Below, piece after piece: positions 773 to 38,159 of a stretch of DNA of 64,000 nt. The position numbers were made by a program, and so were the translations under genes. The notes beneath the pieces were generated by a model. The model ran no database searches. It had not been told where the DNA came from and saw only the letters and a program-made list of their open reading frames with translations. Positions within the stretch are counted from its first letter, which is position 1. Each line of letters opens with the position of its first letter. The DNA is taken from sequence record MZ475895.1. One strand, 5' to 3'.

Positions 773-780
773 CTGTAAAT
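773..780 (+). promoter_or_regulatory. CTGTAAAT motif, candidate phage-sigma promoter element
   Basis: Intergenic, 33 nt before ATG 814; recurring motif. Confidence 0.5.
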
Positions 781-813
781 GATCTTACTTGGTTAACCTG
801 TAGGATATTTGCG

Positions 814-1473
814 ATGGCGAAGTCAGTGAAAGAACGAAAAGCGGTTACGAAGATCGCTAAAACAAAGAAGGGAAAAATTCCTATTCGCATTATCGAGGAC
901 ACGCGCCCAATAATCATTTGCCCCGAGATGGAAGACAAACCTCGTCCGTTTCGTTTTCGCGGTCAGTGCCCGATAACAACCTGCCAGTATTGCACACGCG
1001 AAACTGCAACTGGCTGCATGTCGTTAGATCGTAAAGAGTCTTCCGACCGTTCTATCTCTAACCGCGAGATTGCGTACTATAAGCGTAGCCTCTTTCCTGA
1101 ACTTAAAGAGATGGATCAGAAACAGTTGGACACGACTGTTCGACGGGCACAGACTCGTACCCGTACTGCTATCTGTCTCAATATGTTTATTGCCTCCGTT
1201 GATGATTCTGATTCTGATCGTTCATTTCAGTACGTGAAGGGCAGACACCCGTCAGTGGACAATGTGCATAACTACATGGTTCAAACCTTTACCGACTACA
1301 GACCTTGGATGCTTGCCTATCTTGATGATGAGCAGCGCTTCGAAGAACTGGTCGGTAAGATAGCAAATTCTGAATTTAATTTAGGTACAGCCTTGCGTCT
1401 TACGCCTCGTAAGTATCAGGTGTTCTGCAAAGCTCTAAACGACCTTAAACAATCTGGAGAAACCAATGAGTGA
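814..1473 (+). CDS. hypothetical protein with Cys cluster (CPITTCQYC...GC), possible Zn-binding regulator
   Basis: 219-aa ORF, basic N-terminus, Cys cluster. Confidence 0.7.
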   Translation: MAKSVKERKAVTKIAKTKKGKIPIRIIEDTRPIIICPEMEDKPRPFRFRGQCPITTCQYCTRETATGCMSLDRKESSDRSISNREIAYYKRSLFPELKEMDQKQLDTTVRRAQTRTRTAICLNMFIASVDDSDSDRSFQYVKGRHPSVDNVHNYMVQTFTDYRPWMLAYLDDEQRFEELVGKIANSEFNLGTALRLTPRKYQVFCKALNDLKQSGETNE

Positions 1474-3241
1474 TAACTTCATTACTCTTGAGCAATATCG
1501 CGCGATGATCGAACGCAACATCCTGACCGAACCCGCGATGTTAGTCAAGAACCAGACTCAGCCGCTTGGGCGAATCATCTTCCAAGCGCTGGGCGACAAC
1601 ATGCAGATGAAGGACATCATTGTTCCTGACTCTCGCAACGCGATTGACCTGACGCAGCAAGCGCCGCTGTCTAACCTGCTGGCCAGCTCGCAACTCAAGT
1701 CGCTGATTCAGCTTCGCCGTCTGGTAATCTTGAATCCGGATGATATGCCTGCACCAGAGCAAGGCATTAAGAAGCCTACTCTGTCGCAAGAGCCCGTTGC
1801 TGGCGCTACCTCGATCGATGGTACTACGATTCCAAACGCGACTGTTATCGTTGAGCAAAACGGTAACGTCTGGACTGGTACTTCGAACGGTAGCGGTGCT
1901 TTCACTGTTGACGTGTCCGGACTTGCAGAAGGTCCATTCAGCGTAACAGTTACAGCCGACAACTATGCGCCTTCGCGCTTCACTTACACCGCTGGTCCTC
2001 AGCCGTTGCAGCCGTACCCAGAACCTACTATTCATGCAGTCTTCAAAGAGACTCAGGTGACAGGTACTACTGTGGCTGACGCGAACATCGTCGTCGAATT
2101 CGGCGGCAAGTCGTTCACAGGTCAGGCTACTAACGCCGGGGACTTTACCGTACCAACTGACGCGCTGCCGTTCGATACCATCGTCGTCAAATTTGTCGCC
2201 GAAGGTTATCTGGATGCTCAGCGTAGCGTCAACACTTCATCCGTACCAGGCACTGCTACCATCAGCGATCTCAAGTACCTCGTTACTGAAATCAATGGTA
2301 CTGCAAGCCCTAGCGCTCAAGTCGAAGTGCTGGTGGATGGTCAGTCTAATCAGATCGTTAACGCGAACATCGACGGCCTGTGGACTGCAACCGTGCAGCC
2401 TGTCAAAGGCGATGTGAATATCCGCAGTCTGGAAGTTAGCGGTTACGACGAAGCGACTGCAACTGTCAAGCCGACCACCAACACCATGGGCGCAATCACT
2501 ATCGATAACGCAGACCAGTTCGGTGAGAACGAAACTGTCGTTACCGGTACTGTTGCAGGTCTGGATGAGAACGCGACCGACGTTGCTGTGACTGTTACTG
2601 TTCAGGCTGGCGTGTACGAAGGTACAGTCAATCTGTCTAACGGTACCTTCCGCGTTGAAGGCATCGATGCTAAAGCGGGTGTGGGTTCAAGTGGTGTCGT
2701 TGACATTACTTCGGCCTTCTACGAAGAAGCGTCCGAGTCGTTCACGATTCTGGAAGAGTTCTCTGTGCCGACTGTTACACAGGCACAGGACGGTGATACT
2801 TCAATCAAGGGTCAGACTTCAGGGTCTACCACTGTGAAGATCACTATGGGAAGTGAAACGAAGCAAGCATCTGCAACACCTCAGGGTGATTTTGAAGTTA
2901 CTGGCTTCACCAACGTTGCGCCTGGTGCACTCACTATCGAGCTGTCTAAGTCAGGCTACCTGACCAAAACTTCTCAAGTGACGCTGGTCGTTCAGGCGTA
3001 CGGCATTGCTGATGCAGCACCTAAGGTAGATGATACCACGGTGACTGGTCATGCAACGCAAGGTTCTACCGTTACCATTACTCAGGGTAGCGTAACTGGT
3101 GATGCACAAGCTGATGCGTCTACTGGTGAGTTCTCTGTAACTCTGTCTGGTCCGCTGACGGCAGGTGAGTTGCAATTCAAGGTGAGCCATGCTAACTACG
3201 TGGATTACACCGAAACTCTTACTGTGGCCGCTTCGGCCTAA
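1466..3241 (+). CDS. Ig-like (Big) repeat virion surface protein, 591 aa, about 6 Ig domains
   Basis: Six 70-85 aa T/V/G-rich repeats (T.i.GT...a.V.v..G......a...G.F.v......G.i.v......Y), preceded by an N-terminal module shared with the next gene. Confidence 0.8.
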   Translation: MSDNFITLEQYRAMIERNILTEPAMLVKNQTQPLGRIIFQALGDNMQMKDIIVPDSRNAIDLTQQAPLSNLLASSQLKSLIQLRRLVILNPDDMPAPEQGIKKPTLSQEPVAGATSIDGTTIPNATVIVEQNGNVWTGTSNGSGAFTVDVSGLAEGPFSVTVTADNYAPSRFTYTAGPQPLQPYPEPTIHAVFKETQVTGTTVADANIVVEFGGKSFTGQATNAGDFTVPTDALPFDTIVVKFVAEGYLDAQRSVNTSSVPGTATISDLKYLVTEINGTASPSAQVEVLVDGQSNQIVNANIDGLWTATVQPVKGDVNIRSLEVSGYDEATATVKPTTNTMGAITIDNADQFGENETVVTGTVAGLDENATDVAVTVTVQAGVYEGTVNLSNGTFRVEGIDAKAGVGSSGVVDITSAFYEEASESFTILEEFSVPTVTQAQDGDTSIKGQTSGSTTVKITMGSETKQASATPQGDFEVTGFTNVAPGALTIELSKSGYLTKTSQVTLVVQAYGIADAAPKVDDTTVTGHATQGSTVTITQGSVTGDAQADASTGEFSVTLSGPLTAGELQFKVSHANYVDYTETLTVAASA

Positions 3242-3244
3242 TGC

Positions 3245-3262
3245 AAGGGGCTTCGGCCCCTT
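3245..3262 (+). other. cUUCGg hairpin without U-tract (RNA stabiliser or weak terminator)
   Basis: AAGGGGC-TTCG-GCCCCTT directly after stop 3241. Confidence 0.6.
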
Positions 3263-3288
3263 AACAAAACAATTTCTGGAGAAAGACC

Positions 3289-3963
3289 ATGACAACCAAA
3301 GCCGCATCTTCGAGCAAAGTAAAGCCGATTACCCTGAACGCGTACAACGAACGCTACAAAGACGACTCCGTTGCTTCGCTGTATGTACTGAACCGTACTG
3401 AGCCGCGCGGTAACGTAGCATTCTCTGCTGTCAACGATCTGGGCCAGCCTATTGCCGTAGTAGTTCCAGCTACTTTCATTCCAATCGACCTGACCACTCA
3501 GGCGACTAAAGAAAGCCTGATGAAATCTACTCACTTCCGTCGTGCATTGAATCAGCGCCAGCTGGTCATTCTTGACAACGAAAGTGCAGAGAACTTCCTG
3601 CGCTCCAACCCTTTGGCTAAAACCGAAATGCGCAACCTGAGCCGCATCGACGGTCTGATTGCAAGCGATCTGAAAGAGATCGAAGGCTCTGATGATCTGG
3701 AAGAAATCGATCTGGGCGGTGGCGGCGGTCGTAAGAAGATTCGCCACTTCGAAGGCGATAACATCTCGTCTAACCAGTTCGTTAACGCATTCATCTCTCG
3801 CGCCGCAGAAGACAGTCAAGAGTCTGATGAGAACCTTGAGCGTGAATTCCTGAACAAAGGTCTGAGCCTGCCTGTTGAAGAACTGGAGCTGCTGCGCAAG
3901 CACATCACCCGTCCTGCAATCGTTGAGCTGATCGTTCAGGCGCTGGACGAAGCCGAAGCGTAA
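3289..3963 (+). CDS. hypothetical (possibly virion) protein, paralogous to the N-terminus of the Ig protein
   Basis: 224 aa, GGAGA RBS, alignable 70-aa module plus acidic C-terminal half. Confidence 0.8.
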   Translation: MTTKAASSSKVKPITLNAYNERYKDDSVASLYVLNRTEPRGNVAFSAVNDLGQPIAVVVPATFIPIDLTTQATKESLMKSTHFRRALNQRQLVILDNESAENFLRSNPLAKTEMRNLSRIDGLIASDLKEIEGSDDLEEIDLGGGGGRKKIRHFEGDNISSNQFVNAFISRAAEDSQESDENLEREFLNKGLSLPVEELELLRKHITRPAIVELIVQALDEAEA

Positions 3964-3986
3964 TCGTTCAAAAAAAGCATTTAGAC

Positions 3987-4026
3987 AAAAAAAAATGGGA
4001 GGCCCCGAAAGGAGTCTCCCATTTTT
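3987..4026. terminator. bidirectional intrinsic terminator
   Basis: A-run + ATGGGAG...GAAA...CTCCCAT + T-run between convergent genes. Confidence 0.85.
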
Positions 4027-4130
4027 GTTACAGCAACTTATTTTTCTGCTCTGCTCTAATAGCACGTTCTATGCGCGTATTGCCTAGATAACGAAAGTAA
4101 CTAAGTCTGATAGAAGTCTGGTGCTCACGT

Positions 4131-5237
4131 TCACGTAGGTCGGCGAGCGTGTGACTTTTGAACCTTCTTCTTGGCTTTAGCGCCATCTTTCTTTTCCTCT
4201 TTTATCGGACGTGCCCAGCCCAACTCTTTAGCAGGAACAAAACAGTTCTTGCCGTGAATCTCTCTGAGAAGTTCTTTGACTTCCTTGATGATCTGCATAC
4301 TCGCATTATCAGGGTCGAGCTTAATCAGCTTGCCGTCTTCATCGAACTCACGAGGTAATTTGAAATGCTTAACTTGCAGTGGTGAGTTACGATCAAACTC
4401 CGCTTTGATTTTGTTGCGGAGCATCTTACCTGCTGCATCGTTATCTGTCATCGTGTAGACAACGCTGATGCCTAACATCTCAATCGTTCTGCGTTTCGTT
4501 TCACCGAACTGCTCTGCACCCAGCACAGCGACTGCTGGAATGCCATACGACAATAGCGCAAGAGCATCACGCGGACCTTCAACGATCACAATGTACTTGA
4601 GTTTGTATTTCTTCAAACACTCTTTCGCTAACTGCAAGGGGAACAGGCCTTTATCCTTTGCCCAATCACCTTGCGAGTTTACATAGCTGGTGCCGTTCAT
4701 CTGCTTTCTCAGATACGCAGCGATACCACCTATGTACTTTGTTCCATGCTTACACGGAAAGAAACAAATGCTTGTGCCTGTGCGCTGTGCATTCAACAAA
4801 CCACCAGCAGCACGAACAAGCGCTCCAGGATATCCGCGCCATTCTTCATCGAGTGGCCAATCAAGATAGCTGTTACGACCGAGCGCTTTCATCAACAGAC
4901 CAACTGACGGGTAAGTACCAATCTTCTGACCTATCTGCTCATACGTTCTGAGCAACGCACTTAACGAGTTCGTGCCAGCATCTTTAATCGCCCAGCCTTT
5001 GATCTCTTGGAGCTTCGCGTGCTGTGCTAACTTGTTCCAGCCGCCTTTCTCTCCGCAACCAAAACAGTGGAAGAAACCTAGAGGTATCTCCATGCCCACA
5101 GAAGTGTAAATACCACAACTAGGAGTCTTATCACTGTGGAAGGGACAACACACCATGATAGTGTCGCCGTTATATTTCTTATCGCCGGGTATCTTGCCTA
5201 TTTCATCAAGAATTATCTGATGGACATCTTCTGCCAT
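4131..5237 (-). CDS. dnaG: DNA primase (DnaG-type, CHC2 zinc finger + TOPRIM)
   Basis: CCPFHSDKTPSC...FHCFGC zinc finger; IVEGPRDAL and MTDNDAAG TOPRIM motifs; start moved to ATG 5237 with GAGGA RBS. Confidence 0.92.
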   Translation of the reverse strand: MAEDVHQIILDEIGKIPGDKKYNGDTIMVCCPFHSDKTPSCGIYTSVGMEIPLGFFHCFGCGEKGGWNKLAQHAKLQEIKGWAIKDAGTNSLSALLRTYEQIGQKIGTYPSVGLLMKALGRNSYLDWPLDEEWRGYPGALVRAAGGLLNAQRTGTSICFFPCKHGTKYIGGIAAYLRKQMNGTSYVNSQGDWAKDKGLFPLQLAKECLKKYKLKYIVIVEGPRDALALLSYGIPAVAVLGAEQFGETKRRTIEMLGISVVYTMTDNDAAGKMLRNKIKAEFDRNSPLQVKHFKLPREFDEDGKLIKLDPDNASMQIIKEVKELLREIHGKNCFVPAKELGWARPIKEEKKDGAKAKKKVQKSHARRPT

Positions 5238-5277
5238 ACCATCCTCTACTTGCTTCGTAATTTGAGCATATACGCAC

Positions 5278-5285
5278 ATTTACAG
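5278..5285 (-). promoter_or_regulatory. CTGTAAAT motif upstream of primase
   Basis: Reads CTGTAAAT on the minus strand, 40 nt before primase ATG. Confidence 0.5.
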
Positions 5286-5299
5286 TTTCTGGAGCTATC

Positions 5300-7090: not shown

Positions 7091-7098
7091 GGTAATAT

Positions 7099-7579: not shown

Positions 7580-8038
7580 ATGCGTGATATACTGATCGCT
7601 ATTCAGTATATGTGTGTCAAGCGTATGGTCTTCCCGATTGTCACTGCCCGCATTGAGCAGAAGAATGGTTTCTTGGTAATGCACGCCATGCGTTTCAATG
7701 TCAGTCCCAAGAAATTCTTCGAAGCTATTAACGAGCGCAACGGTCAGATCAATTGTGTCTGGCTGCTGCGTGCATTTACTCGTACTGCAATCAGTTATGG
7801 CCTCAAGCCTGTGATCGTCGAGAAGCTGAATGAGTACCAAGCGTTCAGCTCTCGTTTCTTTGATCACTCGGATGTAGACCTGACTTATCGTCGTCAGTAC
7901 GATTACCGTGAACTGGCAATTCTGGCAGAGCATCCCAAACCTCGAATTTATACGCTGAATGGAGTTGATTACGATGGCGTACAAATCCCAAGCAAAGAAA
8001 CCCAAGAAGTCGAAAGCCGCGAAAGAAGCGGAAGTTAG
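7580..8038 (+). CDS. hypothetical protein (152 aa)
   Basis: Start reassigned from 7319 to ATG 7580 (upstream part is an off-frame reading of GAT/GAC repeats). Confidence 0.65.
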   Translation: MRDILIAIQYMCVKRMVFPIVTARIEQKNGFLVMHAMRFNVSPKKFFEAINERNGQINCVWLLRAFTRTAISYGLKPVIVEKLNEYQAFSSRFFDHSDVDLTYRRQYDYRELAILAEHPKPRIYTLNGVDYDGVQIPSKETQEVESRERSGS

Positions 8039-8630
8039 ACAGAAAGCGCACAAGCAAGCGCGTTCGGGTAAGCTCGGTAAAGCAGTAAAAACAATGAGTG
8101 CGGCGTCTGCAAAGAGTCGTCGTATGACCAAAGGCGAGAAGCGTGCTGTAATGCTTACGCCGTTCAAAGCACAGGTTGTTCCCCAGCCACCTAAAACTCC
8201 TCTGATGGATAAAGGTCTGTCGCTGAATGCTCTCATCAAGTCAACTCCACGACTGATGAAAGAGAATGCGATGGAGTGTTATGTGAACTCAGTCAAGCGT
8301 GGCAAGACACCGAAAGGTTTGCCTTTCATTCAAGCCAACGTTAGACACAAAGACCCACTGCGTCCTAACAAGACCGTGCGCATTCACAAGCCGATGATTG
8401 TTGGCCTTGACGATCCCTACAAGCCGATTTCAAAGCAGAAGCGCGTGCTGGTCAGTTGTCCGTGTGAGAACTTTGTGTTCATGTGGGAATACGCTGATGC
8501 CGAACACGGCGCTGCGCGTATCATCTACGGTAACGGCGAACCGCCTGACTTCACTAACCCCGGTCGTGCTCCAGGTCTGTGCAAACACCTGATGGCTTTA
8601 GCTGATCAAGTAAAACTGCACGGAGACTAA
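7974..8630 (+). CDS. SWIM zinc-finger protein with basic N-terminus
   Basis: VSCPCENF...GLCKHLMAL (CxC...CKH); GGAG RBS before ATG 7974. Confidence 0.75.
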   Translation: MAYKSQAKKPKKSKAAKEAEVRQKAHKQARSGKLGKAVKTMSAASAKSRRMTKGEKRAVMLTPFKAQVVPQPPKTPLMDKGLSLNALIKSTPRLMKENAMECYVNSVKRGKTPKGLPFIQANVRHKDPLRPNKTVRIHKPMIVGLDDPYKPISKQKRVLVSCPCENFVFMWEYADAEHGAARIIYGNGEPPDFTNPGRAPGLCKHLMALADQVKLHGD

Positions 8631-11759: not shown

Positions 11760-11787
11760 AAGCGGTGGCCAATGTGCTGCCGCTTTT
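11760..11787 (+). terminator. intrinsic terminator
   Basis: AAGCGGTGGC...GCTGCCGCTTTT. Confidence 0.7.
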
Positions 11788-11807: not shown

Positions 11808-12131
11808 ATGGAAATGCTCGTAAGCCTTAGCCATGAGTTGCGTGTCGATGAGCAAGACGCACGCACGGCAGAAGAAGCACAGCCTCAGCAAAATCCTGAT
11901 CAAGCACGCGCCCTTGAGCTGCAAGAAAAGAAACGCATCGAAGACACTTACGGTGTTGAAGCCACTGATGAAGAAATCAAACGTGGCGAAGATGCAGAGG
12001 CCGAAAAGAAACAAGCAGAGGAAGAGTCTGCCAAGCCTGAGAAGGTTGAGAATCTCGGTCAGTTTAAGCCCCGTGAAGATCTGACTGCCTCACAGATACA
12101 AGATGCGCACGATAAGCCAATCAATCTGTGA
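11808..12131 (+). CDS. hypothetical E/Q-rich protein (107 aa)
   Basis: GGAGG RBS before ATG 11808. Confidence 0.7.
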   Translation: MEMLVSLSHELRVDEQDARTAEEAQPQQNPDQARALELQEKKRIEDTYGVEATDEEIKRGEDAEAEKKQAEEESAKPEKVENLGQFKPREDLTASQIQDAHDKPINL

Positions 12132-12135
12132 AAAT

Positions 12136-12143
12136 CTGTAAAT
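12136..12143 (+). promoter_or_regulatory. CTGTAAAT motif upstream of the sigma gene
   Basis: Intergenic, 33 nt before ATG 12177. Confidence 0.5.
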
Positions 12144-12176
12144 AAGAGTCAAAGCAACTGACAGGTGTATTTGACC

Positions 12177-13214
12177 ATGAATAACAAGTCTAACCTGACA
12201 GGCGGTCAAATCGAAAGCGTCATGGACACGATGCTTCACGACTGCCTGAGGGAGATTGTTGAGAATACGGATATATTCGATGTGCAGCTAACGTACCTGT
12301 TGGCTCTCATCACGTCGAACAAAAAGCGTAAGCCCTACAACGCTCAAACCCGTGACCGCGCGATCAGCCTTCTGATTCGTGCGCTTTCAGTTCCTCGTAA
12401 TCAGAAAATGATCTACATTCAGGAACTGAAAATGGAACGCAACTTTATCTATGTGTTCCTGGAAAATGTAATTAAGCGGTACTACGTTACTTATGTTGAT
12501 CTCTATCGCGCATTCATTTGCACGCAAGATGAGGTCAAGCGTAAAGCGTATGCGAATCGCCTGAACGTGTATGTCAAAATGTTCGGTGCCGATTCCCGCT
12601 CCAAACTGTTTGTTGCGCTGTGCCGCTTAAACGATCTGATGCCGCAGTTCATGGAATACTTCCATAGCGTTGTCGGTGACTTCTATCGTCTGAGCAGCAA
12701 GCAAACGAAATTTTATATTGATACCAATAAAGGCAAGCTATACGACAGCAAGGACGTGCGTCAAAACTTCCTGCGCAATATCATTATTGCTATCAATAAG
12801 TATGACTCGTCGCGAGGTGCGATAGTCAGCTACGTGAAGTGGTGGATTCTGAACGCTCAAACCTGTAGCAGCTCCGAGCATGAGTACGGTATTGCTTACA
12901 CGATACCTCAGACTCAGCGTAAGAAACTCGCAACAGGTGAAGACAACACTTCAATGAATTTCTCGGTTAGTCTCGATGCTCCAACGTCTGAATCTGATGA
13001 AGGGGCGGACGCGTCCTTGCATCAAAAGGTGAGTGACCATCATCACCTTGAAGATCACGTTGACAGCGAAAGACGTACTGAAAAACTGAGGCTGCTTATT
13101 AAGCGCGTTGACCCCTATGGAGTGGCCCGACTGACTATGGACGTCGGAGAGGAGTTCGATAAATTCGAGCTGGAAAAAATGCAGCGACATATGCAGCTTC
13201 AAGGGCTAGCCTAA
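12177..13214 (+). CDS. phage RNA polymerase sigma factor (sigma70-like region 2)
   Basis: DVRQNFLRNIIIAINKYDSSRGAIVSYVKWWILNA matches sigma70 regions 2.2-2.4 (A..kfD..rG..fstYa.WWI.qA); SVSLDAP resembles region 3. Confidence 0.8.
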   Translation: MNNKSNLTGGQIESVMDTMLHDCLREIVENTDIFDVQLTYLLALITSNKKRKPYNAQTRDRAISLLIRALSVPRNQKMIYIQELKMERNFIYVFLENVIKRYYVTYVDLYRAFICTQDEVKRKAYANRLNVYVKMFGADSRSKLFVALCRLNDLMPQFMEYFHSVVGDFYRLSSKQTKFYIDTNKGKLYDSKDVRQNFLRNIIIAINKYDSSRGAIVSYVKWWILNAQTCSSSEHEYGIAYTIPQTQRKKLATGEDNTSMNFSVSLDAPTSESDEGADASLHQKVSDHHHLEDHVDSERRTEKLRLLIKRVDPYGVARLTMDVGEEFDKFELEKMQRHMQLQGLA

Positions 13215-13216: not shown

Positions 13217-13224
13217 CTGTAAAC
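13217..13224 (+). promoter_or_regulatory. CTGTAAAC motif upstream of SSB
   Basis: Intergenic, 37 nt before ATG 13262. Confidence 0.5.
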
Positions 13225-13261: not shown

Positions 13262-14518
13262 ATGGGACGTGGATTTGGTGACATTCAGGACAACAGCAAA
13301 CGCGATAGCCTTCGCGAGTCCGAAATTTTTGAAATCTTCCCTTTAGCGAAGAAAGCAAACGGCGCGTGGGTATCGATTCGTCTGTTGGACCTTGACCTGC
13401 TTCCAATCAAGAAGCACTGGATTAAGATCATGGGCGGGAAAGATAAAGATAAGGAAATCAAAATCCCGCGTATGTGCGTCAGCTTCGACCCTGACAATCA
13501 GAACAAGCCGCTCAAAGGCATGAAGTGTCCGTACTGTGGTATTCAACACGGTAACGATGAGTCGGGCGCACCAGCGCAGTATGACTACAAGTGGTACGCG
13601 CAAGCAATCATCCGTGATGTGCAGGCCGGTGCTCCTCGCAAAATGCCGAGCATGACTAAGAAAGAACAAAAGTCAGGCAAGAAAGAAATGGGCAGCGAGT
13701 CTTGGACTCCTGTGCAGTGTATCGGTCTGTCAAACTCTCTGGCAAGTAAAATCCAGCAGCTGGGTGAGCGTAACATTCACACGGTCAAAGATAAGAAAAC
13801 CGGTAAGAAGTCTAAGCAGGCGTTCCAGGTTAACCATCCGAAGTATGGCTGTGATATTGAAATCAAATACAACGCCAAGAAATCTCCGGCTGAACGTTAC
13901 ACCCTCGAACGTGGCGATCATACTCCACTGACGAAAGATGAACAGGCGTATCTGACCTGGGACTTCGACAACTGGAACGAAATCTACGACCTGCTGGGCC
14001 GTCTGGACGAAGATGCTGCTATGGCAGACTTCAAAAAGATGGACGTTCTCGGCGGTGAGTCTCAAGTCGATGGAGACGACGATGAAGACGAAGACGATGA
14101 TGACGACATGGCGCTCGGCAAGAAAAAGAAAGGCGCCAAAGGCAAAGCGGACAAGAAAAATCGCCGCTCAATGGACGATGATGACGAAGACGACGACGAA
14201 GACGATGAAGATGATCGTCCGTCAAAATCTAAGAAGTCCAAGTCCAAGTCGAAGTCTCGTGCTCTGTTAGACGACGATGAAGACGATGAGGACGAAGACG
14301 ATAAGCCTAAGAAGAAAAAGAAATCTTCTAAGGACAAGCCGTCCAAGTCGTCTAAAGTGAAGTCCAAAAAGTCTAAGAAGTCAGATGATGACGACGAAGA
14401 CGAAGACGACGAAGATGATAAGCCGAAGAAGAAAAAGAAATCCTCTTCGGTGAAGTCGTCGTCTAAGAAAAAGTCTTCGAAGGACGATGAGCCTAAGAAG
14501 AAAAAGAAAAAGAAGTAA
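13262..14518 (+). CDS. single-stranded DNA-binding protein (gp32-like) with block-charged D/E-K tail
   Basis: Position between sigma and recA; IRLL, C..FDP...KCPYC and NHPKYGCDIEIK gp32-like motifs; about 150-aa low-complexity tail. Confidence 0.65.
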   Translation: MGRGFGDIQDNSKRDSLRESEIFEIFPLAKKANGAWVSIRLLDLDLLPIKKHWIKIMGGKDKDKEIKIPRMCVSFDPDNQNKPLKGMKCPYCGIQHGNDESGAPAQYDYKWYAQAIIRDVQAGAPRKMPSMTKKEQKSGKKEMGSESWTPVQCIGLSNSLASKIQQLGERNIHTVKDKKTGKKSKQAFQVNHPKYGCDIEIKYNAKKSPAERYTLERGDHTPLTKDEQAYLTWDFDNWNEIYDLLGRLDEDAAMADFKKMDVLGGESQVDGDDDEDEDDDDDMALGKKKKGAKGKADKKNRRSMDDDDEDDDEDDEDDRPSKSKKSKSKSKSRALLDDDEDDEDEDDKPKKKKKSSKDKPSKSSKVKSKKSKKSDDDDEDEDDEDDKPKKKKKSSSVKSSSKKKSSKDDEPKKKKKKK

Positions 14519-14526: not shown

Positions 14527-14554
14527 GGGGTGGCTAGCGCCGCCCCTTTCTTTT
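14527..14554 (+). terminator. intrinsic terminator
   Basis: GGGGTGGC-TAGC-GCCGCCCC-TTTCTTTT. Confidence 0.8.
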
Positions 14555-17123: not shown

Positions 17124-17507
17124 ATGCGTACTCTGATTCATACCGCAGACGTAACCAATCTGTCTGTGCTGGAACTGGAAGAAGGCTCTGTAGCAAAGCC
17201 TGTTACTCCAAATCTGATTTCTGATCTCAAAGAGCTGCTGTCACGCGAAAACCTGAGCCAGAACATTCGCCACGTTGTGTTCATCTCTGCTGATCAGGTC
17301 GGCGTATTCACCGAAGCTGAGATGATCAACTACTTCGACCCAATCGAGCAGGTGTCTGAAATCAACGCAGGCAATATCGGTACTGTGCTGGCTATGCAGG
17401 TTATTCGTGTCGATGACAAGACTAATCTGATCGCAGTGGCTGGTGTCACTGATGTGGAAGAAGGCGTTACTATCAACGAGTTCAACGCATCGCCTGTAAA
17501 TCTGTAA
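17124..17507 (+). CDS. hypothetical protein (127 aa)
   Basis: GGAGA RBS. Confidence 0.75.
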   Translation: MRTLIHTADVTNLSVLELEEGSVAKPVTPNLISDLKELLSRENLSQNIRHVVFISADQVGVFTEAEMINYFDPIEQVSEINAGNIGTVLAMQVIRVDDKTNLIAVAGVTDVEEGVTINEFNASPVNL

Positions 17508-17509
17508 AT
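17494..17509 (+). promoter_or_regulatory. tandem CTGTAAAT-CTGTAAAT
   Basis: Two adjacent copies; the second overlaps the TAA stop. Confidence 0.35.
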
Positions 17510-17577: not shown

Positions 17578-18300
17578 ATGACAATCAAATTTGTCGAAGT
17601 ACCGAACATTAGTATGTTCGAGGGTCTGGTGCATGGCGCCAACCGACACGCACAAAACGCCAACATCGGCGGCAAGGCTCGTTACGCATTCTACGTGGAT
17701 GTGACAGAAGCTGCGGCAGAAGCTGCACTGTATTCAATGTTGCGCAAGAAGGCACACGCAGATGTTAGAGCTGTGGGCTACTCTGTTTCTCATACTGTTC
17801 GCGGTATGACTCAACCTAAAGAGATTCCTGTTTTCTTGTCGGACAATTTGTCTCACATATCATTGGATTCTTTGAAACAAAATTTATGTGAGTTGCTTCG
17901 TGCGCTGTGTCGTTCAGCCGCCAGCTCGGATAGCAATATCATTCTGTATTACCAAAAGGACATGGCTTTCATCAAAAGCAAAATGTTCGATTGGGTTCTT
18001 GAAAGCAAGTTAAGCAGACCTTCAAAAGTAGACTGCGAACTGTATGTTCGTTCCTCAAACATTGATCTTAACGTCCTTCTTAATATCGTTAGAGATCACG
18101 ATTATATCGGACACTTTGCATCTAGCATACCACAAGAGATTACAATAGGCTCTGATGCGAGTGCCATAGATGCCGTCAAGTTATGTGACACAGCCGACGT
18201 ACTGGCTGCTCAAGGCCGCAAAGTGCATCTGTGCAATGACATTTACCGCAAAGCGGTGTCTATCTCCTTTGCCGACGGTATTCCGCGTAATCAACTGTAA
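17578..18300 (+). CDS. hypothetical protein (240 aa)
   Basis: AGGAG RBS before ATG 17578. Confidence 0.75.
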   Translation: MTIKFVEVPNISMFEGLVHGANRHAQNANIGGKARYAFYVDVTEAAAEAALYSMLRKKAHADVRAVGYSVSHTVRGMTQPKEIPVFLSDNLSHISLDSLKQNLCELLRALCRSAASSDSNIILYYQKDMAFIKSKMFDWVLESKLSRPSKVDCELYVRSSNIDLNVLLNIVRDHDYIGHFASSIPQEITIGSDASAIDAVKLCDTADVLAAQGRKVHLCNDIYRKAVSISFADGIPRNQL

Positions 18301-18344
18301 ACCAAACACATTGCTGTGTGTAGTCTTTGGCCAAACTTAGGCTC

Positions 18345-20930: not shown

Positions 20931-21004
20931 TCTCATGGGTGCCTTAGGGCGCCCATATTCGTTTATATGCTAATTTCTACCTACATTCAACTAGGAGAGA
21001 CAGC

Positions 21005-26477: not shown

Positions 26478-27083
26478 ATGTTCACCAAAGCATTCTTCTT
26501 CAAAACTAACTACTCTGTATTGGCCGAAGGTGAGTTCGCGCTGCCTGTTGACTCACTGACCTCTCTCGTCAACTCGCGTATTTTCATCTGCATCACAGAA
26601 GACAACCTGCGCTTCGCACTGACCAACATCACTGTGCAGCCGATTCGCAATGGCTTCTTGCGCGTTGGCTTCGAGCCGAAGACTGACGTGAATGCAATCA
26701 CTACTCCAATCATCACGCCTAAAACGATGTGGAGCGAGTATGATTTTGATGCGTGCAGTGTCGAAAACATTCCGTCATTCAATATCAGTACGCATGAAGA
26801 CAAGAACAACGAACAACTGATTGCACTGTCATATGACCTTCGTATGGCTCTCATGCATTATCGTGAAGGCATGTACTGCGTGACCGACATCGTTTTGCGT
26901 CTGCATGAACACGGCATTTTCGTTGTAGATATTGATCAGAATCTCAAGGTTGCTCTCTCGCCTATCGCCGTGCTTAGCGAACGACCTACACATGCGATTA
27001 GTCTGAGCAAAGACAACGGCGTGCTGTCCCGCATTGATGACTTCGAGCTGCCTGATCTCGCTAAACTGATCGTCCTACTGTAA
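26478..27083 (+). CDS. hypothetical protein (201 aa)
   Basis: ATG 26478 after GAGAT. Confidence 0.75.
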   Translation: MFTKAFFFKTNYSVLAEGEFALPVDSLTSLVNSRIFICITEDNLRFALTNITVQPIRNGFLRVGFEPKTDVNAITTPIITPKTMWSEYDFDACSVENIPSFNISTHEDKNNEQLIALSYDLRMALMHYREGMYCVTDIVLRLHEHGIFVVDIDQNLKVALSPIAVLSERPTHAISLSKDNGVLSRIDDFELPDLAKLIVLL

Positions 27084-27135
27084 ACAAACAACTCTAGCCT
27101 CGCATCGTGCGGGGCTTTCTGCTTTGGAGAATACC

Positions 27136-28117: not shown

Positions 28118-28125
28118 CTGTAAAC
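28118..28125 (+). promoter_or_regulatory. CTGTAAAC motif
   Basis: Directly after terminator, 35 nt before ATG 28161. Confidence 0.5.
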
Positions 28126-28160: not shown

Positions 28161-28535
28161 ATGCCAAAGCGCCGCTTTTATTTGATGTTCTTTATCAGTC
28201 AGGCAGAACTCGACGCCAAGACTTTCTATCAACACAACATGCGCATCCTGACAACGATACGCCGCACACGCTGCATTTTCCTTGTGGTAAGAGAGACTGG
28301 TGAAGTCTATGTGCCAGGCAGCGCCGTGTATCAGTCTGCAATCGAAGAAGATCTAACGCAGATGGTCTTTGACGATCTGCACAAGGCCACCGAGTCTGTG
28401 AATGCGGTTGAGTCCTTTGCTCAAGCCATCGCAGTAAACAAAAACGATAAGACAGTTCGCTACTGCGGCCGCAATCCAGAAGTGAGTGTCGTCTTCTTTG
28501 ATCGCATGTTCACGAAAGTGGAGGTTCATCTATGA
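28161..28535 (+). CDS. hypothetical protein (124 aa)
   Basis: GAGAA RBS before ATG 28161. Confidence 0.65.
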   Translation: MPKRRFYLMFFISQAELDAKTFYQHNMRILTTIRRTRCIFLVVRETGEVYVPGSAVYQSAIEEDLTQMVFDDLHKATESVNAVESFAQAIAVNKNDKTVRYCGRNPEVSVVFFDRMFTKVEVHL

Positions 28536-31498: not shown

Positions 31499-31512
31499 GC
31501 ACAAACTACCTC

Positions 31513-31534: not shown

Positions 31535-31555
31535 CTTAAACATCAGGAGTCTATC

Positions 31556-34083: not shown

Positions 34084-34090
34084 ACTAAGG

Positions 34091-34270: not shown

Positions 34271-34271
34271 A

Positions 34272-34478
34272 ATGAAAGACATTGTGCTACACACAGCCCT
34301 TTTATTGACCATGATCGTTGTTAGCTTTTTGACTCTCCACTACATTCGCTTCCTGAGTCTGGGCTACTATATGCTGATCACTATGACAGCATTCGTACTG
34401 GCAGTCTATGCGTGCAAACGTCTCGCATCTGTCGTATCTAAAAATCGTTTTAACAAAGTGAGAATCAATCGTGGCTAA
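34272..34478 (+). CDS. small 2-TM membrane protein (68 aa)
   Basis: Two hydrophobic segments, basic C-terminus. Confidence 0.6.
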   Translation: MKDIVLHTALLLTMIVVSFLTLHYIRFLSLGYYMLITMTAFVLAVYACKRLASVVSKNRFNKVRINRG

Positions 34479-35016
34479 ATCTTTCGGTGTGTACCTGACG
34501 TTCATTCTGCGCCATCGCCCGCAAGACATTGGCCTTGCAATGGACACTCAGGGTTGGGTATCAGTTCCTGACTTGCTCGAACGTGCTCAATATAAGAAGC
34601 AGCCAATCACGTTAGAGATGTTGCGTGAAGAAGTTGCTACTGACGGTAAAGGCCGCTTCCAGTTCAACGCTGCCCACTCTCGCATTCGTTGTGTGCAGGG
34701 ACATTCAGTTGAGCATGTGATTCTTAACCTCAAGCCGTACACGAATCACAATGACCCGCTGTATCACGGAACGGCCAGCAAGAACGTTGCGTCTATTCTT
34801 GCGCAGGGAATTCTTCGCGGTAAACGTAAACACGTCCACATCGCAACCAACACCGCTACTGCTAAGCAAGTTGGTCAGCGTCACGGTGAACCTGTTGTAT
34901 TTGAGATCGACACGTATGCCATGATTACTCACGGCTACAAGTTCGAACAAGCCGAGAACGGTGTGATTCTTATCGAGCACGTCCCATCCCGATATCTAAG
35001 GTTGGTAGAGTTATGA
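34471..35016 (+). CDS. kptA: RNA 2'-phosphotransferase (Tpt1/KptA)
   Basis: LTFILRH.P..IGL.MD.QGWV, DGKGRF, RIRCVQGHS, LYHGT, RKHVH, VGQRHGEPVVFEID, NGV.L...VP..YL. Confidence 0.93.
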   Translation: MAKSFGVYLTFILRHRPQDIGLAMDTQGWVSVPDLLERAQYKKQPITLEMLREEVATDGKGRFQFNAAHSRIRCVQGHSVEHVILNLKPYTNHNDPLYHGTASKNVASILAQGILRGKRKHVHIATNTATAKQVGQRHGEPVVFEIDTYAMITHGYKFEQAENGVILIEHVPSRYLRLVEL

Positions 35017-35420
35017 CTGAACAACGAATGAGTTATTGCGGTTCACGTTACATCCGTACATCTTCCGGCAGGTGGTATTTGCTTTTCGAACGAGCGGCCT
35101 GCTTGTGCATCAATCGTCATGGTACCCAGTACTGGCGAGCAGGTACGCAAGTGTGGAAAGATGTGTCCATCTCAACTCGCGCCACTTTGGAAAACGAGTT
35201 TATCAGTCGTACCTGCAAAGATTTCAGGGAGTCGAAGTCTGCGTACAACAGATGGGGCAAGGTGATTCGTACACTCATTCTAGGTGCAGGTACTAACGAG
35301 CATCTCCACGATTTAGCGTCTATTCTTGAGTCACTGAGACAGACGCATATAGGGCGCAAGCAACAGCAACTGCGCACTACATTGGATGAAATAGCTATTC
35401 AGTCAAGAACCACCCTATGA
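35013..35420 (+). CDS. hypothetical protein (135 aa)
   Basis: ATGA overlap. Confidence 0.7.
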   Translation: MTEQRMSYCGSRYIRTSSGRWYLLFERAACLCINRHGTQYWRAGTQVWKDVSISTRATLENEFISRTCKDFRESKSAYNRWGKVIRTLILGAGTNEHLHDLASILESLRQTHIGRKQQQLRTTLDEIAIQSRTTL

Positions 35421-35426
35421 TATAAT
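35384..35426 (+). promoter_or_regulatory. GGWCAAAAT-box promoter (copy 4)
   Basis: GGATGAAAT 35384, TATGA-TATAAT 35421. Confidence 0.65.
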
Positions 35427-35477
35427 AGCAGCGAACGCTAAACAGTCTCGTTTAGCTACTTACATGAGGATATGTAC

Positions 35478-35579
35478 ATGAATACCAACTACTGCCCGTT
35501 TCGCGCTGTGATGTACCACGCTTCAATCATCCTTCTCGCCATTTGCTCTGGCGTTGTTTTAGCCCATGCACATTTCTGA
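35478..35579 (+). CDS. 33-aa hydrophobic peptide (not in ORF track)
   Basis: GAGGA RBS; MNTNYCPFRAVMYHASIILLAICSGVVLAHAHF*. Confidence 0.6.
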   Translation: MNTNYCPFRAVMYHASIILLAICSGVVLAHAHF

Positions 35580-35590
35580 GGAGAAAGATT

Positions 35591-35827
35591 ATGTCAGACC
35601 CAAAACCAAAACCAGAAGTAACAAAAGCTGATCTCCAACATCTGCTGCACGTAGCAGGTGCGTATGAAGGCAACGACCGCCATCGCTGGTACGCAATGTT
35701 CGTCGTGCTCAAACTGAAACGTCAGATGGACGGTCAGAGCCTGCCGCGCTCTTGTGCCAACATTACGCATGAGAGCCAAGACTACGAGATCGAAGAGGCT
35801 TGCTACAAGCTGGGGTATTTATCATGA
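35591..35827 (+). CDS. hypothetical protein (78 aa)
   Basis: GAGGAG RBS before ATG 35591. Confidence 0.75.
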   Translation: MSDPKPKPEVTKADLQHLLHVAGAYEGNDRHRWYAMFVVLKLKRQMDGQSLPRSCANITHESQDYEIEEACYKLGYLS

Positions 35828-36189
35828 AAGAGCGCCGTAACTATTACTGGGATAGCCCGTTCTATTACGGGCTGATACTCTGGCGTAAGCGTATGCGCAA
35901 TGTCGTGCTGTTTCTGATTGCTATCTTAATCTATCATGGCACGCACGCACCTGCCGTTGAGAACATGTGGATGTGGACAGGCACTATCTTCGGCATTCTC
36001 TTTCTCGTCTGCTATATCAAGATGTGGGAATACGAGCGCATGATTCTCGAAGCTATGGGGCCGCTGAATAATAACTGCGTTATCGGTGCTCTTAACTTTG
36101 AGAGTCTTGAGCGCCGCCATGCTGTTTGGTATCGGAAGAAATTTAAATCCGAACCACCTAAGACTAACACGTATTCGAGGGAAAACTAA
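35824..36189 (+). CDS. membrane protein, 2 TM (121 aa)
   Basis: Hydrophobic segments; ATGA overlap. Confidence 0.7.
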   Translation: MKERRNYYWDSPFYYGLILWRKRMRNVVLFLIAILIYHGTHAPAVENMWMWTGTIFGILFLVCYIKMWEYERMILEAMGPLNNNCVIGALNFESLERRHAVWYRKKFKSEPPKTNTYSREN

Positions 36190-36551
36190 TGCCACGTATG
36201 TTCACACAAACTCATCGCAACAAATATAAACTGACCGAAGCTGATGCAGACTATCACGGTGATGCCTGCGAAGCTGTCTACCTTGAAGGTATGGAGTTAC
36301 TCAAAGAGCTTCACTATCTGAAAGGGCTTCTGCATGATCGTCACATTGCAGAAAAGCCGATGCCCATTCCTCCTGAGTCTAAGCGTTGGTCAAAGTGGAT
36401 GGCTTGCACGAAAATGTCACAGCTTGATGTGCGCTCCACTGACCGTCTGCGCAAGCGCTATCGTCGTGTCATGGAAGAACTCAAGATTGCCCGCGTGTCT
36501 TATACGTTGCTGCACACGGCACGACATGCACCGGCGGTCGAGGTTAAGTAA
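36189..36551 (+). CDS. hypothetical protein (120 aa)
   Basis: TAATG coupling. Confidence 0.7.
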   Translation: MPRMFTQTHRNKYKLTEADADYHGDACEAVYLEGMELLKELHYLKGLLHDRHIAEKPMPIPPESKRWSKWMACTKMSQLDVRSTDRLRKRYRRVMEELKIARVSYTLLHTARHAPAVEVK

Positions 36552-36832
36552 TGCAGTTTACTTCAAAAGAAGAAATAGACGAAACGTATGCAATGGTTGT
36601 TCATGCCATGCTGGCCGCCCTTGTGCCTGACGATACTCGCACAAAAGACCAACGCGTTCTCGACTACGTGGCGAAGCACTTAGCGCCCAATAACATTTTT
36701 GACAGGGATCTGTTTAGCATTACATTTGAACATCGGTTCAAGTTTCAAACAACACACAGGATGATGCGCAATGCTAAAGTGAGCGGCGCACCTTTTCTAT
36801 ATCTAAAGCAGGCTCATAGCCTAAAGAATTGA
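36551..36832 (+). CDS. hypothetical protein (93 aa)
   Basis: TAATG coupling. Confidence 0.7.
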   Translation: MQFTSKEEIDETYAMVVHAMLAALVPDDTRTKDQRVLDYVAKHLAPNNIFDRDLFSITFEHRFKFQTTHRMMRNAKVSGAPFLYLKQAHSLKN

Positions 36833-36842
36833 GGTTAGTATC

Positions 36843-37106
36843 ATGGCAGTAGGTTTCGCCAAAGATGATGACGTGTCCAACACCGTCGAAACAAACGTGC
36901 TGAATGAAATCGACCGCGCTCGTTCTGAGTTGCGTGGCGCTGGTAGTTCGCATTGTATCAACCCTGACTGTGGTGCAGAGATTCCACTCATGCGCCGCGT
37001 AGCAATGCCGAACGCTCGCTACTGCGTTAGCTGTCAAGCACACCACGACGGTACGCCGACTGCTGGCTACAATCGTCGTGGTTCCAAAGATTCTCAACTG
37101 AGGTAG
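36843..37106 (+). CDS. ybiI: DksA/TraR-family C4 zinc-finger protein, YbiI-like
   Basis: CINPDC..IP..RR.AMP.ARYCVSCQ; N-terminal MA.G.A.DD.V and C-terminal GYNRRGSKDSQLR as remembered for E. coli YbiI. Confidence 0.85.
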   Translation: MAVGFAKDDDVSNTVETNVLNEIDRARSELRGAGSSHCINPDCGAEIPLMRRVAMPNARYCVSCQAHHDGTPTAGYNRRGSKDSQLR

Positions 37107-37111
37107 AAACT

Positions 37112-37420
37112 ATGTTAAGCAAACTTTGGGCTGCCTTAGGGATAACTTATCCGTCAGTCGATAGCGCCCTACTCAAGAATGCAAAGTGTGTGCGTATAGG
37201 TCAGGACGGCTACTGCATTCGCTCTGCTTCTGGTTTTGCAGAAGCACTTACCCATCATATGGCCCGAGACTATGTTACTTTGGCCTCTGACACTGAGGCT
37301 AGAAAGAAGATTGTTGACCGAGCACAGTCTTTGACATACCCATGCGTTGTTTGGTTCACTGGTCATGATTTTAATTCTATGTCTGTGGGTGATCCAAACA
37401 TGGCCTACCCGGTACAATAG
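37112..37420 (+). CDS. hypothetical protein (102 aa)
   Basis: GAGG RBS. Confidence 0.7.
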   Translation: MLSKLWAALGITYPSVDSALLKNAKCVRIGQDGYCIRSASGFAEALTHHMARDYVTLASDTEARKKIVDRAQSLTYPCVVWFTGHDFNSMSVGDPNMAYPVQ

Positions 37421-37439
37421 AAAACACGTGGAGAATAAA

Positions 37440-37580
37440 ATGTCCGAACCAGACAGAGAGAGTGAAGTACCTTGTGCGCGATGCACTAAGCCCACACCTG
37501 TTGTTGATTTGGGTGGGCCTTACGGTGATCTGTGTGATGACTGTGTAACGCTGATGCGTGAAGAACAGGAGGAAGAATGA
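37440..37580 (+). CDS. small zinc-finger protein (46 aa)
   Basis: CARC...CDDC; GGAGA RBS. Confidence 0.6.
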   Translation: MSEPDRESEVPCARCTKPTPVVDLGGPYGDLCDDCVTLMREEQEEE

Positions 37581-37759
37581 AACTGTCCGAATCTGAGTTA
37601 GAGTCTTTGCGTTTTCGTATGCGTCTGCGTGAGCAACCCAAGCCGATGCCTGACACGCACAAAATGCCAGACAAGAAGTTTGACAGTCATAAGCTGGACA
37701 AGTCCACTGATATGACGCTCGGCGATGTTCGCCACCACTTCCCTCCAAAAGGAAATTGA
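37577..37759 (+). CDS. hypothetical protein (60 aa)
   Basis: GGAGG RBS. Confidence 0.6.
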   Translation: MKLSESELESLRFRMRLREQPKPMPDTHKMPDKKFDSHKLDKSTDMTLGDVRHHFPPKGN

Positions 37760-37760
37760 A

Positions 37761-38093
37761 ATGGAAGAGATTCTTGATGTTGACAGCAAGATGTATGCTG
37801 TCTATGACGGTCACGTTGTTACCAACTATCATCATGAAGGTAGCGGCGTGATGTACATCGAAGACAGCTTCTGGCTCAGCTTGAATCTGCGCGATGATCT
37901 TTTCCCTGCGCCTGCAACTCGTTTGGCGCATTACAAAAACATACACACTCGTTCTATTGATCGCGTCCGTGTTAGCACCCTTCAGGATATACGCGAATCC
38001 TTGTATAAGGTTCGTCACTATATTCGTTGGTTCGAGTATATCTCCGAAGATAAGCTGCAAGGTTTGCAGCACCTGTTCCGCGAACCTGATTAA
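37761..38093 (+). CDS. hypothetical protein (110 aa)
   Basis: AAGGA RBS before ATG 37761. Confidence 0.7.
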   Translation: MEEILDVDSKMYAVYDGHVVTNYHHEGSGVMYIEDSFWLSLNLRDDLFPAPATRLAHYKNIHTRSIDRVRVSTLQDIRESLYKVRHYIRWFEYISEDKLQGLQHLFREPD

Positions 38094-38151
38094 AGGTAAC
38101 GCTCATGTGTTTGCTAGTCAATTTCCTCAAGGACGAGGGTACGATGCGTAT

Positions 38152-38159
38152 CTGTAAAC
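38152..38159 (+). promoter_or_regulatory. CTGTAAAC motif
   Basis: Intergenic, 31 nt before ATG 38191. Confidence 0.5.

Follow-up and report, generated by a model that had tools for sequence, protein, structure and literature searches.

Promoters of phages that reprogram host RNA polymerase

Jumbo phages without an RNA polymerase (RNAP) of their own must reprogram the host enzyme. Late promoters of phage T4 carry the element TATAAATA, which is read by gp55 (about 185 amino acids, aa) together with gp33 and the sliding clamp, and T4 middle promoters join a MotA box at −30 to a sigma-70 −10 element (TAnnnT), with sigma appropriation by AsiA. In SPO1 (gp28, then gp33/34) and phiEco32 (gp36), phage proteins of the sigma-70 family reprogram host RNAP stepwise; sigma genes of a later stage are driven by phage promoters of an earlier one, and the phiEco32 promoters consist of a −10 element only. 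Here we analyze a candidate promoter motif, CTGTAAAY, in the Erwinia jumbo phage pEa_SNUABM_14 (MZ475895.1; 264,285 base pairs, bp), starting from a 64,000-nucleotide (nt) stretch of its genome (186001–250000, hereafter the window) that holds a phage sigma factor gene at window position 12177. The CTGTAAAY promoter class is denoted as class M and a second class, with the motif (C/G)TAATTT, as class L. All motif distances are counted between the end of the motif and the annotated start codon.

The closest described system is phage Lu11, whose record (JQ768459 / NC_017972) carries 20 features labeled "putative middle/late promoter". Three of these were read in sequence and are 16-mers starting with CTGTAAAT, and the other positions that we checked coincide with CTGTAAA. 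The features precede the genes for PolA, the clamp loader, a recombination endonuclease, the single-stranded DNA-binding protein (SSB) and a DNA polymerase, and two of them head the operon that ends with the Lu11 sigma gene. They are database predictions, for which a literature search found no experimental backing; neither did it find experimental work on transcription or promoters in Y3, AD1, the pEa_SNUABM phages, Lu11 or PaBG, and searching with the motif string returned only noise. One Lu11 feature is entered as 107991..280538. The site is evidently one of 16 nt at 107991 with a wrong end coordinate, owing to which every later region seems to overlap a promoter.

Class M was thus already predicted in Lu11, and pEa_SNUABM_14 adds a member to this known promoter class. 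The two phages share a lineage (the Lu11 sigma is 36% identical), and in both the core CTGTAAAT stands co-oriented ahead of orthologous replication genes (SSB, clamp loader, recombination endonuclease, DNA polymerase, primase, PolA). Middle and late promoters are lumped in the Lu11 record, whereas virion genes carry a separate TAATTT motif both here and in our re-analysis of Lu11. New here are the clade-wide reach of class M, its separation from a distinct late class, its regulon and its likely −10 geometry.

CTGTAAAY is enriched upstream of genes

The window contains 12 exact copies of CTGTAAAY, 11 on the plus strand and one on the minus strand (5278), a modest enrichment over the 4.2 expected (1 of 100 shuffles reached 12). 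The sequence-only reading from which this analysis started had called for a genome-wide enrichment test. Run on all 264,285 bp under a third-order Markov model, it returned 43 copies compared with 13.9 expected, strongly enriched upstream of genes, and these whole-genome counts are decisive where the window alone is only suggestive. Every one of the 43 copies matches the local gene strand, and the shorter CTGTAAA is found effectively 55 times in sense and twice in antisense orientation. Genes lie on the plus strand from 1 to 46 kb of the genome, on the minus strand from 46 to 186 kb (a block of virion and replication genes) and on the plus strand again from 186 kb onward, where a primase-like gene (window 4131–5237) is the sole minus-strand exception.

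Seventeen of the 43 copies are fully intergenic, against an intergenic share of the genome of 6.5% (p = 6e-10), and 24 are positioned 20–55 nt ahead of a start codon, against an expectation of 4.9% (p = 1e-20). An unsupervised scan of all 7-mers in the segments from −80 to −10 upstream of genes ranks CTGTAAA first (30/363 segments vs 4.7 expected, p = 3e-15), and none of its 21 single-mismatch variants behaves alike genome-wide. Our own gene caller was about 85–90% concordant with the deposited annotation, and individual sites were checked against the deposited coordinates; functional gene names follow RefSeq, as annotated for pEa_SNUABM_7 and for Y3, which is syntenic. Enrichment, position and orientation together make it very probable that class M is a promoter.

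Six copies in the window are purely intergenic. The sequence-only reading had placed them 33, 40, 33, 37, 35 and 31 nt before start codons, and all of these coordinates and distances are correct:

773–780, plus strand: class-M core CTGTAAAT, 33 nt ahead of gene 814–1473; predicted transcription start at about 788; CTGTAAA kept upstream of the Y3 ortholog.
5278–5285, minus strand: class-M core CTGTAAAT, 40 nt ahead of the primase gene (4131–5237, minus strand, start 5237); kept upstream of the Y3 and Lu11 primase orthologs.
12136–12143, plus strand: class-M core CTGTAAAT, 33 nt ahead of the sigma gene start at 12177; predicted transcription start at about 12151.
13217–13224, plus strand: class-M core CTGTAAAC, 37 nt ahead of the SSB gene 13262–14518; conserved before SSB in Y3, in Lu11 (an annotated promoter there) and in Vibrio phage GR7B.
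28086–28108: hairpin stem, followed by a T run, of the terminator before the 28118 copy.
28118–28125, plus strand: class-M core CTGTAAAC, directly after that terminator and 35 nt ahead of gene 28161–28535; conserved in Y3.
38152–38159, plus strand: class-M core CTGTAAAC, 31 nt ahead of gene 38191–38556; conserved in Y3.

The position of the 28118 copy right behind a terminator, also pointed out in that reading, is borne out by the hairpin and T run, and the switch of the motif to the minus strand together with the primase gene is seen in Lu11 as well. The other copies overlap or lie within coding sequences (CDSs):

17494–17509, plus strand: tandem CTGTAAAT-CTGTAAAT, straddling the stop of gene 17124–17507 and 68–76 nt ahead of gene 17578; a possible promoter with a long leader.
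42354–42361, plus strand: CTGTAAAT in the 3′ end of a CDS, 77 nt ahead of gene 42439; the same at the orthologous Y3 position, 77 nt ahead of gp292; a possible promoter.
27078–27085, plus strand: CTGTAAAC overlapping a CTG-TAA stop, with a terminator (27096–27116) immediately downstream; kept in Y3; doubtful as a promoter.
18295–18302, plus strand: CTGTAAAC at a gene end, overlapping CTG-TAA, 86 nt from the next gene; not among the Y3 near-start sites; probably a chance copy.
61967–61974, plus strand: CTGTAAAC deep in a 3-kb CDS, 2.7 kb from the next start codon; probably a chance copy.

The overlap of the copies at 17502, 18295 and 27078 with CTG-TAA gene ends, and the location of those at 42354 and 61967 in CDSs, had been recognized before; the listed positions were correct, and the copy at 17494, in tandem with 17502, had been missed. 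Counting only purely intergenic copies was too strict, since several functional-looking copies lie in the last codons of the upstream gene. At the 17494 tandem, Y3 has CTGTAAA at the matching position, 73 nt ahead of gp245; retention of the 27078 copy in Y3 could reflect conserved Leu-stop codons. A hairpin lies between the tandem and the next gene. Lu11 likewise has a pair of copies in tandem, spaced by 78 nt, in front of its sigma-gene operon.

Anatomy of the class-M element

The aligned sites give the consensus A-A-(T/A)-CTGTAAA-(T/C)-A with an invariant core, TGTAAAT. No −35 element was found in the aligned sites, which hold no information upstream of the A/T triplet. Pooling 173 sites from 25 phages shows that the base after the motif is A in 68%, and that 8 nt past the motif A makes up 53% and C only 6%, with C also depleted at +6. 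The GTA that the Lu11 16-mers have downstream of the core is faint in these pooled sites. A terminator hairpin stands directly upstream of 5/28 sites, compared with 17/363 control positions.

Under standard sigma-70-family geometry, TAAAYA would form a −10-like hexamer that runs from T at −12 through A at −11 to a final A at −7. The transcript would then begin at a purine about 7 nt downstream of the element and have a leader of about 20–35 nt; for the remaining intergenic cores of the window this predicts starts at about 5270 (minus strand), 13232, 28133 and 38167. Class M does not look like a host sigma-70 promoter, which has TTGACA at −35 and, at −10, TAnnnT ending in T at −7: it has no −35, and 68% of class-M sites carry A at the equivalent of −7. 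With A rather than T there, class M would need a non-host specificity.

The sequence-only reading had set CTGTAAAY, found 31–40 nt ahead of core genes, beside the single-element late promoters of T4. The motif behaves as a single-element, −35-less core at short distance ahead of genes, and the likeness to T4 is partial. Both are single 8-bp elements, at −10 position and with no −35; the TGTAAATA form of class M agrees with TATAAATA at 7/8 positions; and in both a phage sigma-family protein redirects host core RNAP, which for class M is a prediction. Class M differs in its invariant G at position 2, in an extra C/G before the element and in a regulon of replication rather than virion genes, and no product named as a gp33-type co-activator is present in the Y3 and Lu11 RefSeq annotations that we read. 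It is not a T4-type late promoter, if this means TATAAATA at −10, no −35 and a place ahead of virion genes. With T4 middle promoters class M shares a replication and recombination regulon that includes the gene of the next-stage sigma, but it has one element at −10 instead of a −30 box plus TAnnnT, and A at −7. No product is named MotA or AsiA in the RefSeq annotations that we read, and no search aimed at them was made.

Regulon and the other promoter classes

Genes downstream of class-M motifs in both pEa_SNUABM_14 and Y3 encode NAD-dependent ligase, a DNA polymerase, PolA, a repair-helicase operon, a recombination endonuclease, an SbcC operon, the clamp loader, primase, the sigma factor, SSB, a ParB-like protein and a macro-domain protein, with a DNA methyltransferase in addition in Y3. 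Some small genes of unassigned function are also among the targets. No major virion gene is preceded by a class-M motif. Unlike that of the T4 late promoters with which the sequence-only reading compared the motif, this regulon is not late: class M heads genes of DNA replication, recombination and nucleotide metabolism along with the sigma gene, while virion and lysis genes carry (C/G)TAATTT.

This class-L motif is the second enriched motif, and 27–42 nt separate it from the virion and lysis genes that follow. In pEa_SNUABM_14 it is found before the tail sheath gene (locus L004, 5356–5362, minus strand), the PAAR/baseplate operon and a small gene preceding the portal gene, and in Y3 also before the endolysin gene and the head-tail connector operon. 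The motif is kept in 15/16 Y3 orthologs, our re-analysis of Lu11 finds TAATTT ahead of the major head, tail sheath and endolysin genes, and in GR7B (G/C)TAAT(A/T) precedes the major capsid and sheath orthologs. Class L fits TAnnnT with C/G at −13 and keeps the sigma-70 −10 positions T−12, A−11 and T−7. It is likely the late promoter class. The window holds two class-L motifs and a set of host-type sites:

5257–5263, plus strand: class-L motif GTAATTT, 36 nt ahead of gene 5300; heads the operon that contains the zinc-finger protein gene p218; conserved in Y3.
20970–20976, plus strand: class-L motif CTAATTT, 28 nt ahead of gene 21005.
20387, 24711, 29772, 35418, 41064, 44483, 49951, 53993, 55180 and 56265, plus strand: host-type extended −10 sites (TGnTATAAT/TGnTAYACT).

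The extended −10 sites stand ahead of small-gene clusters between 20 and 57 kb of the window, mostly at 37–66 nt, with those at 41064 and 55180 farther from the next called gene. They often have AAATAG about 20 nt upstream and "cta" immediately before them. They are probably an early class, and perhaps the first motif of the sequence-only reading, in which CTGTAAAY was the second. The simplest reading is an early host-type, a middle CTGTAAAT and a late (C/G)TAATTT class, where the order in time would follow from gene content.

Conservation in related phages

Megablast of window positions 12000–20000 matches pEa_SNUABM_14 at 100% and shows pEa_SNUABM_7 (Snuvirus), Y3 and Dickeya phage AD1 to be close relatives. 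In Y3, CTGTAAA is again the top upstream 7-mer (33/350 segments vs 4.9 expected, p = 2e-17), with 58 sense and 4 antisense copies. The motif is kept at 25/27 Y3 orthologous sites, against a background of 30/285, and at 5–6/11 Lu11 orthologous sites.

For wider comparison, 54 loci around sigma homologs were collected from viral contigs. Either CTGTAAA or TGTAAAT ranks first or second among upstream 7-mers in the pooled sigma loci at 70–76%, 44% and 33–41% sigma identity, and the motif-bearing relatives span a guanine-cytosine (GC) content of 35–57%. Where the flanking sequences have diverged completely, down to 44% sigma identity, CTGTAAAT alone stands out as conserved ahead of the sigma gene, and in two lineages at 44% identity this copy comes right after a terminator. 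The relative at 33% identity (L061) has a CTGTAAAA copy upstream of sigma, and some lineages carry GTGTAAAT in place of the class-M core. The Vibrio phage GR7B, whose sigma is 26% identical, has TGTAAAT as its top 7-mer (24/248 segments vs 3.2 expected, p = 5e-14), ahead of the PolA, DNA polymerase, ligase and SSB orthologs. Co-occurrence of motif and sigma in these loci is partly built in, as they were fetched through the sigma gene. We propose that class M controls one and the same gene set throughout the Lu11/PaBG/Y3-type jumbo phages and as far away as a Vibrio phage.

A change from C to G at the first position of the motif (GTGTAAA in L040, L041 and L051) is seen in too few independent lineages to look for covariation with sigma residues. 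Phyletic patterns do not separate the candidate readers: even GR7B has the sigma, the SWIM zinc-finger protein, a gp112-family member and the two motifs.

The sigma factor and two further candidates

The sigma gene belongs to the class-M regulon, and terminators bracket its unit:

11760–11785, plus strand: intrinsic terminator upstream of the unit with gene 11808–12131, the sigma gene and SSB.
12177–13214, plus strand: phage sigma factor of 345 aa with sigma-70 region 2 only (PHROG 17569).
14527–14546, plus strand: intrinsic terminator closing the sigma-SSB unit.

The only recognizable promoter of the sigma gene is CTGTAAAT. A consensus scan found no sigma-70-type promoter near the gene, with canonical TGnTATAAT sites present elsewhere in the window.

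By its region 2, the protein belongs to the sigma-70 family, according to profile and model comparisons; its binding to core RNAP is predicted. Pfam Sigma70_r2 is matched by 25/32 family members (best E = 2.4e-7), the window protein itself having no Pfam match at E ≤ 1, and none of the 32 matches Sigma70_r3, r4 or r4_2. The family profile aligns with SigA regions 2.1–2.4, including the Y..WW melting motif (E = 0.02–0.27), and 4/4 matches in PDB are sigma factors. Residues N226 and T229, invariant in the family, occupy the positions of sigma-70 Q437 and T440. An AlphaFold2 (AF2) model has a predicted local distance difference test (pLDDT) score of 80, and its top Foldseek matches are all sigma-70 domain 2 (E = 2e-4, template modeling (TM) scores of 0.4–0.48). 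In this model residues 231–287 are disordered and the last 55 aa make up three helices, with no type assigned to them.

The sequence-only reading had modeled this protein on the small sigma gp55. With 345 aa and a canonical region 2 as the only sigma region of its family, the protein departs from that model, and its similarity to T4 gp55 is undetectable: hhalign of the family profile against gp55 gives a probability of 0.3% (at low sensitivity, with gp55 as a single sequence), and phmmer of gp55 against the whole phage proteome returns nothing below E = 0.69. A search of the proteome with the sigma-family hidden Markov model finds only the sigma itself and no paralog.

Two other conserved protein families are candidates for a role in promoter recognition:

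7974–8630, plus strand: p218, a conserved 218-aa protein with a SWIM-type zinc finger; syntenic partner of the sigma gene across the clade.
Genome 262695–263834, plus strand, outside the window: gene 342, PaBG gp112 family, about 375 aa, all-helical.

The p218 protein joins a K/R-rich basic N-terminus to an invariant CxC...CKH SWIM signature: among 27 p218-family sequences C162, C164 and C203 are invariant and K204-H205 nearly so, and nine of the 27 weakly match PF04434 (best E = 0.013). In GR7B and in nearly all of the 54 loci, a homolog is encoded on the strand of the sigma gene and 0.05–4 kb upstream of it. The family is better conserved than sigma, and in several lineages a late-type motif precedes the p218 gene. 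Judged from this linkage, p218 is likely a functional partner of the sigma, as a cofactor, an anti-sigma or a DNA-binding subunit.

PaBG gp112 was called a possible second sigma by its authors (HHpred 97%; PMC7412058). The family is also found in Y3, Lu11 and GR7B, with about 450 representatives in public data. Aligned by hhalign, its profile is collinear with that of the sigma family over regions 2.1–3.0 at E = 0.016 and a probability of 2.8%, and no sequence match was found in Pfam or PDB. The model of a homolog (P0122, 85% identical to the gene 342 protein) has a pLDDT of 91.8; sigma factors are 6/7 of its top Foldseek matches, all with E ≥ 0.19 and low TM scores. In pEa_SNUABM_14 and Y3, the intergenic region upstream of the gene 342 operon holds host-type extended −10 promoters and a CTGTAAAT.

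Searches for other factors were negative. Pfam and PHROG scans of 19 neighboring or candidate proteins revealed no sigma or transcription factor, and the annotated Lu11 transcriptional regulators gp021, gp024 and gp142 are without homologs in pEa_SNUABM_14. No conserved early activator emerged from blastp, by which only 73 proteins are shared with Lu11, almost none of them from the early region.

Which factor reads class M

The reading that we favor, with moderate confidence in it as a whole, is a three-step cascade in which class M is a −10-like promoter of a middle regulon. Host core RNAP, redirected by a phage-encoded specificity factor, would use class M to express the DNA-metabolism ("middle") genes, the sigma gene among them. 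The 12177 sigma would be a class-M product that then reads class L, and class M itself would be read by another conserved phage factor, with the gene 342 product of the PaBG-gp112 family as the best candidate. In known cascades the regulator of a stage is made in the previous stage, and the gene for the late sigma is one of the middle genes (T4 gene 55, SPO1 genes 33/34). Insulated by terminators and with only a class-M promoter, the sigma gene would have no way to start under pure autoregulation (a bootstrap problem). Promoters without a −35, as in both phage-specific classes, suit a sigma that has region 2 only. The proposed cascade resembles SPO1 and phiEco32 in its stepwise use of sigma factors, and phiEco32 in its −10-only promoters; it differs in its consensus sequences, in having one clear sigma with a second merely suggested, and in the SWIM partner adjoining the sigma gene. 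A fully specified assignment, in which, across the clade, host sigma-70 acts first at TGnTATAAT, the highly divergent gp112 family reads TGTAAAT and switches on the replication genes and the RpoD-like sigma, and this region-4-less sigma with its SWIM partner reads (C/G)TAATTT at virion genes, is rather unlikely to be right in every part.

Several points weigh against this cascade. The sigma-likeness of the gp112 family is statistically insignificant in our comparisons. In the Lu11 operon of the gp112 homolog the nearest recognizable upstream motif is GTAATTT, before gp181, which is unlike an early gene. Class L keeps T−12, A−11 and T−7 and so might be read by host sigma-70 with an activator. 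Among the phage proteins only that of 12177 is clearly recognizable as a sigma, and TGTAAATA resembles the T4 late element, which a phage sigma reads. Start sites and timing are deduced from sequence for all phages of the clade, and some class-M copies, upstream of terminators or deep in CDSs, are probably inactive. Whether the 12177 sigma reads class L rather than class M we regard as about an even call; that it reads class M is clearly less probable.

That last assignment is the one made by the sequence-only reading, which took CTGTAAAY as the cognate element of an autoregulatory sigma. The sigma would then drive its own gene and the replication regulon, and class L would be left to host sigma-70 with a phage activator or to another factor. 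We hold it to be a tentative alternative, and nothing ties the 12177 sigma to class M rather than to the late motif. It gains from the lack of a second recognizable sigma in the genome, from the co-occurrence of sigma and motif from Erwinia to Vibrio phages and from the match of the TAAATA core to the T4 late element. A at −7 makes a reading of class M by host sigma-70 unlikely, class L is TAnnnT-like and perhaps readable by host sigma-70, and the invariant N226/T229 (= Q437/T440) suggest a fixed −12 readout. The co-occurrence, however, is partly a product of how the loci were fetched, and class L, the SWIM protein and the gp112 family are spread just as widely through the clade. The sigma unit has no other promoter and lies behind terminators here and in the 44% relatives, and a self-made regulator would depart from the stage order of known cascades.

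Less probable still, though worth weighing, is that CTGTAAAY is not a −10 read by a sigma but is bound by a DNA-binding regulator of the phage, such as the SWIM protein, which recruits or blocks the host sigma-70 holoenzyme. In nearly all loci the sigma gene is accompanied by the gene for a zinc-finger protein whose N-terminus is basic, and the 11–12 conserved bp exceed a plain −10 hexamer. We consider this improbable, as no second conserved element occurs at promoter spacing, the 27–41 nt to the start codon have to include the ribosome site and leave scant room for a separate −10 and leader, and T-A at the −12/−11 equivalents with a purine 7 nt on fit direct sigma-type recognition.

An action of the motif in the RNA 5′ leader, as a processing site or translational operator, would explain why it is strictly strand-specific, co-oriented with genes and close to start codons. 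It would leave unexplained the copies right after intrinsic terminators, where upstream transcript is scant; no conserved secondary structure (sigma leader z = −0.55) or Rfam match was found, and at 27–54 nt from the start codon the motif keeps no fixed register to the ribosome site. We judge this reading very unlikely.

Finally, the reading of the motif as chance, or as a side effect of coding-strand composition and of genes that end in CTG-TAA (Leu-stop), fits the five genome copies that overlap stop codons and the weak enrichment in the window alone, but is effectively refuted by the genome-wide statistics, by the lack of enrichment of one-mismatch variants and by replication in Y3, Lu11, GR7B and dozens of metagenomic relatives at 35–57% GC.

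Uses of the promoter map and further observations

The Lu11/PaBG/Y3 lineage includes many Erwinia and Dickeya phages considered for biocontrol, and the present analysis offers a testable map of three promoter classes, their regulons, predicted starts and three candidate factors: the sigma, the SWIM protein linked to it and the gp112 family. The deep conservation of the 8–11-bp class-M element in Erwinia, Pseudomonas and Vibrio phages, across 35–57% GC, makes it useful as an annotation marker for replication operons in metagenomic jumbo-phage contigs, and, as soon as the factor that reads it is known, it could be put to use as a small orthogonal promoter part.

The sigma 5′ leader (12144–12176, plus strand) is almost identical in pEa_SNUABM_14, AD1 and Y3, whose genomes are only about 80% identical. 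It holds an inverted repeat, GTCAAA...TTTGAC, that ends at the start codon; the hairpin fold is not thermodynamically significant (z = −0.55). Gene 11808–12131 (plus strand), between the upstream terminator and the sigma promoter, encodes a 107-aa protein with a weak match to Csm6 HEPN (PF09670, E = 0.0036) and is without a promoter of its own. No Rfam family was matched and no tRNA gene found in the window. Outside the window, at genome positions 86605–87921, a 1.3-kb stretch without annotated genes lies inside the virion block, with a CTGTAAAT at its upstream edge (genome 87902, minus strand).

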